NCBI GenBank assembly: GCA_011109175.1
Contig: RDEW01000024.1
Span: forward strand, 365,199-429,198
Direction of reading: 5' to 3'
Length of the DNA: 64,000 nt
Origin: Dicyema japonicum
Taxonomy: Eukaryota > Animalia > Dicyemida
This document shows positions 12,458-33,358 of the stretch, in pieces. The notes under the pieces are model-generated. The model did not search any database. It saw nothing but the letters and a program-made list of their open reading frames with translations, and had not been told where the DNA came from. Each line of letters starts with the position of its first letter. The stretch's first letter is position 1. Made by a program: the position numbers and the translations under genes.

Positions 12458-13271
12458 ATCTCGAAGGCCTCAATCAGAATTCTCATTTTCTCCTCGTGCG
12501 CCTTCTGGAATCCAACACAACTAATCTGTGAGCGGGGTGGTTTCGGAATAAGAATTGGAGATGTATACCCTTCTCATAAGACACGTCGTGGCTGTGTATT
12601 GTTGAGAGTTCACTGCTTGCACAGAGTAGCAAATCCCTTTACATTTTGTTGGATAAGGTCTTCAAGTGATGAATGTATTAGTTTTTATAGTTTCCCGAGA
12701 TTAGTAATAGAAGTGGCTGTTAAAGCCTAAATGTCCCGGATTCTTTGTTTGTTCGTCCAGGACAGATTGATTCCTCATGACGTACAGGCATAGCTGACAG
12801 ATGGTTCAATGACTGTTTGATGTCTCATGAACTCCGGATACGTCATTAATCTATGACTGGGAGATTATATTTGAAGTACCTGTGAAATTAATCTCGTGGA
12901 ACTGTGGGATATCCAACTGACAATATCAATGGAACCAATAATAATTAGTAATAATAAGGCAAATTTCCACCTATCTAACATATATAGTTAGTTTCCAATC
13001 AAATTCAATAAAACAGTGAAGAATACTACAATATACAACTAAAATGGTTATACCACTCCATATAGTTTAGAGGTTCAAGAATCTTACTCTTTATTCTGTT
13101 TACATTTAATTGTACTATCCTAGTTGGTGCAGGATTTTGATTAACATCTCTACATAAACATAGTTCTTCCTTGTTGGTACATCTAAAATGGATAGAAAAC
13201 GCTAAGCTCCCTTCTGTCAAATATAAAACGTCAACGGGGATCCACATTACATTTTTTGTAATTTCTATTTA

Positions 13272-13471
13272 CAGGGTTTTCCTATTTATTTAATAACTTT
13301 GTCATAAAATTTAATAACTTTGTCAAAAAATTTAATAACTTTGTCAAAAAATTTAATAACTTTGTCATAAAATTTAATAACTTTGTCAAAATGTTTAATA
13401 ATTCGTCAAAATACTTAATAACTTTGTCAAAATGTTTAATAACTTTGTCAAAATGTTTAATAACTTTGTCA
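13272..13471. repeat. Left TIR: about nine ~21-bp direct repeats (TAATAACTTTGTCAAAAAATT consensus)
   Basis: Repeat units read directly from the sequence; inverted counterpart at 14711-14866. Confidence 0.95.
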
Positions 13472-13526
13472 AGGGTCAAATTAAAAGAAACCAATTTCAT
13501 AATTAATTGAAAAAAACAACTATAAA

Positions 13527-14577
13527 TTAAAATTCTTCATAAGCCAATGCTTTAACTAAATAGCTCCGCATGTGGCTATACAAATTATTGCACACATCTG
13601 ATGGAATTTCTCCGATGTTTTGGATTGCGTTTATTAATTCCTCAGAGTTCTTACAATTTTTCTTTTTGATGTTATTTTTCCAAACAGAAAAAAACTCTTC
13701 AATTGGATTGAGTTGAGGAGTATAAGGAGGCAAAAAATACAATTCATACCCTATACACGTTAAAAATTAATTGGATACCAGTTCCGAATACAACATTTTT
13801 TAATTGCTCGCTCTTGTGAATTGATGCATTGTCACATATCAATACCATGTCTTAAATATAATATATAACCATACTTTTTTTCCCTGCATGTTCAAGCTTA
13901 TAATTAAGCTGTATTACAAAATCAATGAACGTCTCTGCGCGATAAGGGGAGGAATTGATTTCGTAATGTAAAAGGCCGTCCACAGAAATAGCAGCACAAA
14001 TAGAAAAATTTTTCTCTCTTATGTTTCTAATACATTTTTTCGGAGTAACTCCTTTTATAGATCTTCCAAATTTGGATCTCATCGAACAATTGACTCCCAT
14101 TTCGTCTATAAAAATAAGCCGTTGATTATCAATTTCAATTATTTTTCTGGCAAATCTATATCTTTCTTCCATATTTATTGTAGAATTTCTCGCCATAGGT
14201 ACAAATTGAATCTTTTTAAAACTATATCCAAATGTATCTAGCGTCCTATTTATTGTCGATAAAGAGACATTTTTTCTTTGCACATCAAATAAAGAATTTT
14301 TTAAATTTTTCAGAGTAAATGAAGCATCTTCTTCAATTTTTTTAGTCAAAAATAAGATGTCCGATGAATTAAGTTTTTTCTTTCGTCCACAATTATTTTT
14401 TGTTGAAGCAAAACTTCCTGTATTTTTGTATTTTTTGACGATAGAAACAACTGTCTGATAGTTAATACAGATGTCTTCGCTTATTTTTGAATAAGCCAAC
14501 CCTGCTTCATATTTATTTATAATAAGTTTTCGGTTATCCTCGGATACAGTAGTATTTTTGTTTTTGTAACTATTCAT
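13527..14577 (-). CDS. DD34E transposase, 332 aa, three exons (14577-13875, 13850-13779, 13750-13527)
   Basis: GT-AG introns 13874-13851 (24 nt) and 13778-13751 (28 nt) join ORFs 13852-14577 and 13527-13742 into 999 nt in frame. N-terminal HTH region; triad FIDE / CDNASIH / LNPIE with 34 residues between the second D and E. Confidence 0.9.
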
Positions 14578-14624
14578 TTAATTCAATTTGCGCTAAAATT
14601 TGTATTTATAGGAACTTAATAATC

Positions 14625-14710
14625 CAAATAAATATAAATAATGATCTAATAAATATAAATAATGATCTCAAAAATATAAATAATAATCCCAAAAATATAA
14701 ATAATAATCT
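14625..14710. repeat. Four ~21-22-bp subterminal direct repeats upstream of the transposase ATG
   Basis: AAATATAAATAAT(G/A)AT unit repeated four times. Confidence 0.8.
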
Positions 14711-14866
14711 TTACAAAGTTATTAACATTTTGACAAAGTTATTAAAAATTTTAACAAAGTTATTAAGTATTTTGACGAATTATTAAACATTTTGACAAAG
14801 TTATTAAATTTTTGACAAAGTTATTAAATTTTATGACAAAGTTATTAAATAAATAGGAAAACCCTG
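14711..14866. repeat. Right TIR: about seven ~21-bp direct repeats
   Basis: TTTTGACAAAGTTATTAA units, the reverse complement of the left TIR units. Confidence 0.95.
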
Positions 14867-15299
14867 TATAATTAAATACTATAATTATATTAATAATTAT
14901 GTTAAATAGATTTAAAAAATAGCTTTAAATTTTTAAAACCAATTTATTACAACTGCTGCTTTTTGTTTTTAAAAAAAGCACTTATTTTACTGCTTTTGAG
15001 GATCGGATTCTTAAGATTTAACCCCACGTTCCCAAAACTTTTTGGGGTACGCATTTTCCCACATGTTACACCTTCAGAGTTGGCATACTTGTCTAAACCT
15101 TAGGTCCACCAGAGACCAGATAATCAGAGTTTAAGTTTTTTCAATTTTTGATAAACATAACGCCTGTCAATTGGGGTACCTCAATGCTATTTTCCAAAAA
15201 CTTTCACTTTATATTTTCTATGTTTTAACACAAGTTCCCAGACATGGTCAATGGGGAACAACTCACGTAGGTCAAAAATCATAATTTATTTTTTTTCAA

Positions 15300-33039: not shown

Positions 33040-33358
33040 AGGACTTGTTCATTTTGACAAAGTTATTAAATTTTATGACAAAGTTTATTAATAATAATAA
33101 TAACAGCCTTTTTCATCACGGAGCCGTGGTATTAGCTCCGCATAGGCAGGACACACTTTATTTAAGTAAAGAACAGTTAATTTAACTAATCGTAGAACCA
33201 AGGAATGATCTTCACTTCTTTTTTTTTTTTCTTGTGTGAGTGTCCTTTCTAGACAATCCAGTTCCGCAGTGAGTATTCACTGATGACGGCGTCACTCGTC
33301 AAACCCTTTCCGCATCGTAGATGCGTGGAACCTTCACCAGGTAACTTGGAAAACCATG
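33040..33358. mobile_element. Isolated TIR end of the 13272-14866 Tc1 family, split by a SINE
   Basis: TTTTGACAAAGTTATTAAATTTTATGACAAAG lies left of the SINE and GGAAAACCATG|TA right of it (cf. GGAAAACCCTG|TA). Confidence 0.7.
33085..33343 (-). mobile_element. SINE, 5'-truncated copy (lacks tRNA head)
   Basis: Collinear with the 34337-34653 body and tail; (TTA)n end. Confidence 0.9.

Follow-up and report, generated by a model that had tools for sequence, protein, structure and literature searches.

The DNA analysed here, a 64,000-nucleotide stretch of contig RDEW01000024.1 of Dicyema japonicum, a parasite of octopuses (hereafter the window), carries a Tc1-like transposon with an apparently broken transposase gene, raising the question of whether this gene is a pseudogene or becomes whole when two very short segments are removed as introns of the host's own type. 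The evidence assembled below suggests that the element is probably a full-length, recently amplified Tc1 (DD34E) transposon whose minus-strand gene needs two host-type micro-introns to be spliced before a transposase of 332 aa can be made.

Architecture of the element and its transposase gene

The element occupies positions 13272-14866 of the window, is 1,595 bp long with 74% AT, and is flanked on both sides by TA, the left copy of the target-site duplication being read from the sequence at 13270..13271 and the right copy from the sequence and DNA contigs at 14867..14868. Its 26-nt termini (CAGGGTTTTCCTATTTATTTAATAAC) are identical at both ends and the inverted arms extend over 72-89 nt with 93-98% complementarity. 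The inverted end on the 3' side of the gene (13272..13480), where word depth peaked in the DNA contigs along the stretch 12900-15200, begins with this terminus and continues in 21-nt units, and the same terminus and units make up the end on the 5' side (14711..14866). The unit ATTTAATAACTTTGTCAAAAA is present in 8.9 copies at 13288-13472 and in 6.8 copies at 14713-14851, such that the inverted ends are unequal and approximately 200 nt long. These units are putative transposase-binding sites. A unit of 21 nt spans two helical turns, and every unit on the 3' side includes ATTAAA in the orientation of the gene. A second 21-nt tandem array of 4.4 copies (unit TAATAATCTAAAAAATATAAA; 14617..14710) lies between the inner edge of the 5'-side inverted end and the gene, and a possible TATA box on the minus strand (TATAAATA; 14603..14610), as read from the sequence, starts 33 nt upstream of the ATG. 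Repeated ...TTT(T/G)TCAAAA(T)-like motifs were also observed in contig ends of the nearest relatives (L004 positions 1-56 and L005 positions 1-71), the contigs stopping within the motifs, and multi-site ends may for this reason be common to the whole Tc1-like clade.

The coding region is split on the minus strand into ORF pieces at 14577-13852 (241 aa), 13848-13744 (34 aa), and 13742-13527 (71 aa). The first two share one frame and are parted only by a TAA, so the first break is a stop and not a frameshift, and the third piece lies in another frame. Exon 1 (13875..14577; 703 nt) starts with the ATG at 14577 and encodes the HTH DNA-binding region plus the first part of the DDE domain, including D158 (14106-14104). 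It is followed by candidate intron 1 (13851..13874; GTATGG..TTTAAG; GTATGGTTATATATTATATTTAAG), a phase 1 segment of 24 nt, and thus a multiple of three, that contains an in-frame TAA. Exon 2 (13779..13850; 72 nt) carries D241 (13833-13831) within ICDNASIHK and is separated by the 28-nt (3n+1) candidate intron 2 (13751..13778; GTATCC..GTATAG; GTATCCAATTAATTTTTAACGTGTATAG), also in phase 1, from exon 3 (13527..13750; 224 nt), which contains E276 (13700-13698) in PPYTPQLNPIEEFF and the TAA stop at 13529-13527. Without the two segments, all on the minus strand, a 999-nt CDS encodes a 332-aa transposase. The triad D158, D241, and E276, with 82 and then 34 residues between its members (DD34E), is complete only after both segments have been removed.

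These results confirmed the observations of an earlier sequence-only reading of the locus, which had described intact inverted repeats and TA duplication, two broken ORFs that form a single 332-aa transposase with a D/D/E triad when GT-AG segments of 24 and 28 nt (at the coordinates confirmed here) are taken out, and a second catalytic Asp situated in a 72-nt middle exon.

Pfam profiles matched the protein at residues 7-55 (HTH_SB; 1.7e-8) and 78-145 (HTH_Tnp_Tc3_2; 7e-7), with HTH_23 also above the cut-off. The three pieces match the DDE_3 profile in collinear order (positions 1-78, 81-111, and 110-146), with no part missing; the exon 1 match covers residues 153-231, and only the exon 3 piece (positions 110-146; 31.4 bits) passes the curated cut-off alone. 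Relatives of the transposase carry PF13358. The only solved structures matched in a PDB search were the Sleeping Beauty PAI subdomain and the SB100X catalytic domain. Sleeping Beauty and Tc1 resemble the Dicyema element in their HTH_SB and DDE_3 domains, DD34E spacing, and direct repeats within the inverted ends, whereas the match to Sleeping Beauty is remote (E about 5e-6) and elements of the Sleeping Beauty type lack introns and carry two binding sites at each end. The transposase is Tc1-like and not mariner-like. The TA duplication, the terminal inverted repeats, the paired-like HTH with a DDE_3-type domain, and the D/D/34/E triad were all found, and these sequence tests support a complete DD34E Tc1-like element of the IS630-Tc1-mariner superfamily.

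In the proposed mechanism, a single gene would be transcribed from the minus strand, and its pre-mRNA would encode the 332-aa transposase once two phase-1 spliceosomal micro-introns (24 and 28 nt) had been removed. The N-terminal paired-like HTH of this protein would presumably bind the 21-nt repeats of the inverted ends and its RNase-H-like catalytic domain would carry the three triad residues. Unspliced RNA would give a product ending at 241 aa, at the in-frame TAA of intron 1, and retention of intron 2 alone would shift the frame and end the product at 269 aa; as read from the sequence, both retention products lack a complete active site.

Boundaries of the candidate introns and splicing signals of the host

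Both segments start with GTAT and end with AG. As 0.28% of arbitrary 24- or 28-nt stretches in the window are bounded by GT..AG, the probability that both segments have such bounds by chance is about 1.5e-5, with the two equivalent placements of intron 2 taken into account, and falls to about 7e-7 for GTA..AG bounds. Their AT content is 83% (intron 1) and 75% (intron 2) vs. 65-71% in the exons. GC content across the analysed DNA is 29-43% per 2-kb interval and mostly 32-37%, and the published D. japonicum genome has 36.7% GC and 49% repeats (PMC6736024). In this species only GTa and AG remain as splice signals (PMC13644364), and the introns include abundant 20-27-nt classes and have a mean length of 38 bp (PMC13644364, PMC6736024). 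Introns of this type are also predicted elsewhere in the window, where a kinase-like host gene (47778-46684, minus strand) forms one open frame of approximately 320 aa only without eight GT..AG segments of 22-26 nt. One of these inferred introns, of 22 nt (47629-47608), begins with GTC instead of GTA, and the gene product has HSDLK in place of the HRDLK of kinases. At 28 nt, candidate intron 2 is longer than all eight and sits at the upper edge of the host range, and candidate intron 1 ends in AAG while the eight host introns end in TAG or CAG.

The effect of removing the segments was evaluated against relatives of the transposase, 73 of which were recovered by word-based and profile searches. 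Almost all of them consist of a continuous 320-370-aa ORF on a contig of approximately 1.2 kb, and those with named sources come from mites and microsporidia. A MAFFT alignment of the spliced protein with the 55 full-length relatives had zero gaps at both junctions (e.g., KLEHAGKKNMVLICDNAS vs. ELKDTNMTEMIIICDNVA and VFGTGYELYFLPPYTPQLNPIEE vs. VESNSHSFCFLPSYTPQLNPIEE), D158, D241, and E276 aligned with the invariant D/D/E of these relatives, and the spliced protein retained 48 of the 49 columns conserved at 80% or more. The segments thus combine GT..AG borders and lengths in the host range with restoration of frame and colinearity upon removal, supporting their prediction as introns with host-type boundaries and sizes. 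In a host with GTa and AG as its only signals, such segments would be expected to be spliced, and the micro-intron reading passes every sequence-level test that was run.

Different readings of the breaks were also considered and rejected. A ciliate origin, with TAA decoded as Gln, was disfavored as CAA or CAG is used for each of the nine Gln residues of the transposase and the relatives lack an 8-residue insertion at the first break, and also by a GC content of about 34% and the presence of other genes with animal-type micro-introns. The 28-nt segment was additionally considered as an internal eliminated sequence (IES) of the Paramecium type, but on inspection an excision bounded by TA would take out 22 or 24 nt instead of 28 and would match the relatives less well.

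Copies, empty sites, and the state of the family

The abundance of the element was assessed with contigs from three data sets of one sample (X1, X3, and X4) placed on 12900-15200, which cover the flanks and the element alike and so behave like DNA. In X1, the coding part had approximately 25x the word depth of the flank, which is itself repeated, and 1317 of the 3213 placed contigs were at least 99% alike. Joints corresponding to flank versions without the element were identified at 13269>14867 (with a single TA) and 13271>14872, consistent with cut-and-paste mobility. Together, the depth and the near identity of the contigs support a multi-copy, young, and recently amplified family. The recent origin proposed by the sequence-only reading was accordingly borne out by near-identical contigs, coding depth, TA duplication, and empty sites, and the many near-identical genomic copies that it had suggested searching for were found. 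Copies with the segments absent, which it had named as evidence against itself, did not appear: none of the joints listed for X1, X3, and X4 (at least 85% likeness) skips either segment, indicating that intronless copies at this likeness are absent or rare, and intron 2 is present in all listed DNA contigs.

Low-depth contigs approximately 96% identical to the element at 13531-13828 and 14013-14283 were detected in a further run (X5), which was filed in 2015 with another organism label, including a 297-nt contig that spans 13531-13828 with intron 2 in place. Their source could be a related dicyemid or dicyemid DNA within a host sample. The DNA at the insertion site (12900-13271 and 14867-15200) is itself a repeat, occurring in several paralogous contig versions of which most are without the insertion. 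A tblastn search identified no second copy of the family within the 64-kb window. An isolated 40-nt fragment at 33052-33091, with two units of the 21-nt end repeat at approximately 97% match and neither a terminus nor a coding part, may be a remnant of another copy. Scans of the window for tRNA genes and Rfam families gave no matches.

A 1-nt deletion in the A7 run at 13875-13881, on the border of exon 1 and intron 1, accounts for about 23% of X1 depth (14 contigs), and other indels are rarer among the DNA contigs of the family. With the deletion in about a quarter of the depth, many copies would be defective; the A6 copies possibly represent a frameshifted subfamily, or a homopolymer error. 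At seven well-supported coding positions the present copy departs from the majority, with synonymous changes at five and amino acid replacements at two (K292R and I183T), a synonymous excess that is weak by binomial estimate (p about 0.01-0.1).

Such frameshifted defective copies, common in the family, would fit a dead or non-autonomous lineage in which the segments are disabling intron-like insertions that are never spliced and the copies were multiplied by a transposase acting in trans, and non-autonomous amplification is common among Tc1/mariner elements. Against this, both insertions have GTAT..AG borders and sizes of host introns and their removal restores exact colinearity, and 48 of 49 conserved columns are retained. 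In addition, the listed joints of the three DNA data sets contain no intronless variant at 85% likeness or more, and segments with the GTa and AG signals of this host would be expected to splice (PMC13644364). A lineage amplified in trans with a disabled gene is consequently considered decidedly unlikely.

The introns could alternatively be real and spliced within a family that is now extinct or silenced, the present copy being an intact-looking fossil without current transcription or mobility. The surrounding 10 kb is a decayed repeat region with no ORF longer than 110 aa apart from the transposase and many copies have indels, both as a fossil would have, whereas more than 40% of the placed contigs are at least 99% alike, the termini match exactly, and the ORF spans the full length of the family protein from N-terminus to C-terminus. 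This explanation also appears unlikely, if somewhat less so than that of trans amplification. The reading favored here, an intact element dependent on splicing, would further imply that the gene is expressed and the element autonomous.

Relatives, origin of the segments, and significance

In a maximum likelihood tree, the Dicyema protein nested beside eight relatives with continuous ORFs (98/85 support). These relatives (P0001-P0008), which have kin in mites and microsporidia, are compact Tc1-like elements of approximately 1.2 kb found in public read assemblies and resemble the Dicyema element in encoding proteins of 331-338 aa with a common PPYTPQLNPIEE motif and in having short repeated motifs in their ends. 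They differ in that all of their genes are uninterrupted and their identity to the Dicyema protein is 47% or less. For the five genes checked in DNA (P0001, P0002, P0003, P0004, and the mite protein P0033), the uninterrupted state was judged by a gene length of three times the protein length plus a stop codon. Neither site is interrupted in any of the 55 full-length relatives, one of which is a mite gene on an annotated chromosome. The tree and the comparison of intron presence proposed in the sequence-only reading hence gave a nested Dicyema protein among relatives lacking both interruptions, and on this placement both segments appear to be insertions specific to this lineage in a gene that is otherwise continuous.

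The introns might instead be ancestral to the transposon lineage and have merely shrunk along with those of the host, rather than having been gained in a dicyemid. The relatives were retrieved via continuous ORFs, a bias by which intron-bearing kin would be missed, and the nearest relative is only 47% identical to the Dicyema protein, leaving a long unsampled branch on which ancestral introns could be hidden. Among representatives of 15 billion proteins, an exhaustive HMMER search recovered none above 48% identity. As a search for a spliced protein, this and searches of protein collections with the 241-aa piece and the 71-aa exon 3 piece recovered nothing above 56% identity, which is uninformative either way, the repeat being fragmented into Dicyema contigs too short for such proteins. 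Shrinkage of old introns is nevertheless very unlikely given the 55 of 55 uninterrupted relatives, the annotated mite gene among them, and the nesting of the Dicyema protein within such relatives. With no interruption in the gene of any detectable relative, gain of the introns within the element after its entry into the host lineage is most likely, a timing that is presumed. Tandem duplication of adjacent exon sequence was rejected as a source of the introns, local alignments of introns with their flanks being no better than shuffles (p 0.17-0.7).

Intron-bearing elements of the Tc1 type are already known, as exemplified by Minos and the Paramecium Anchois element. Minos of Drosophila hydei is a Tc1-like element of approximately 1.8 kb with 254-bp inverted ends and one host-typical intron of 60 bp (PMC2874221). 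It shares long inverted ends, a TA target, and a transposase gene split by short host-typical intron sequence with the Dicyema element, a likeness in architecture, and moves by cut-and-paste, as the latter presumably does. The Dicyema element differs in its two predicted introns, of 24 and 28 nt, and in ends composed of 7-9 tandem 21-nt units. The germline Tc1/mariner elements Anchois, Sardine, and Thon of Paramecium are described with predicted introns in their transposase ORFs in a host with 20-30-nt introns (PMC3464196), making them likewise Tc1/mariner elements of a micro-intron host whose introns are predicted. Paramecium is a ciliate that uses a different genetic code and eliminates DNA in a programmed manner, whereas Dicyema is an animal. 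For animal introns a floor of roughly 30 nt has long been assumed, and those predicted here fall below it. The statement of the sequence-only reading that introns in such elements are not usually this small is fair for animals, but for Paramecium, also a host with micro-introns, predicted introns in Tc1/mariner transposase genes had already been published (PMC3464196).

A bolder proposal combines de novo gain of both micro-introns inside the transposon after it colonized dicyemids, a gain that could be dated, a transposase dependent on the spliceosome, and a damping role for the 241-aa protein; taken as a whole, it is a doubtful, if conceivable, scenario. Under it, the element would be inert in ordinary animals such as the cephalopod host, as its transposase would depend on a spliceosome that accepts introns shorter than 30 nt. 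The 241-aa protein from unspliced RNA, able only to bind DNA, could damp transposition. Intron retention has such an effect in the P element. The element may have adapted to the host spliceosome, while its restriction to this host and control by splicing are speculative, and the interpretation offered by the sequence-only reading is on the whole partly supported.

If splicing were confirmed, the genes of mobile elements in a micro-intron animal would carry the extreme intron type of their host, and introns would still be being gained in a lineage known for intron shrinkage. In a genome with 49% repeats, transposon annotation based on ORFs would then misclassify intact elements as pseudogenes. 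As a young, multi-copy element with two datable introns, it would be a handy substrate for studying recognition of 24-28-nt introns and could be a candidate native transposon tool for dicyemids. Judged from its sequence, its main value probably lies in providing a case of intron gain in a transposon and a warning for transposon annotation in micro-intron genomes.
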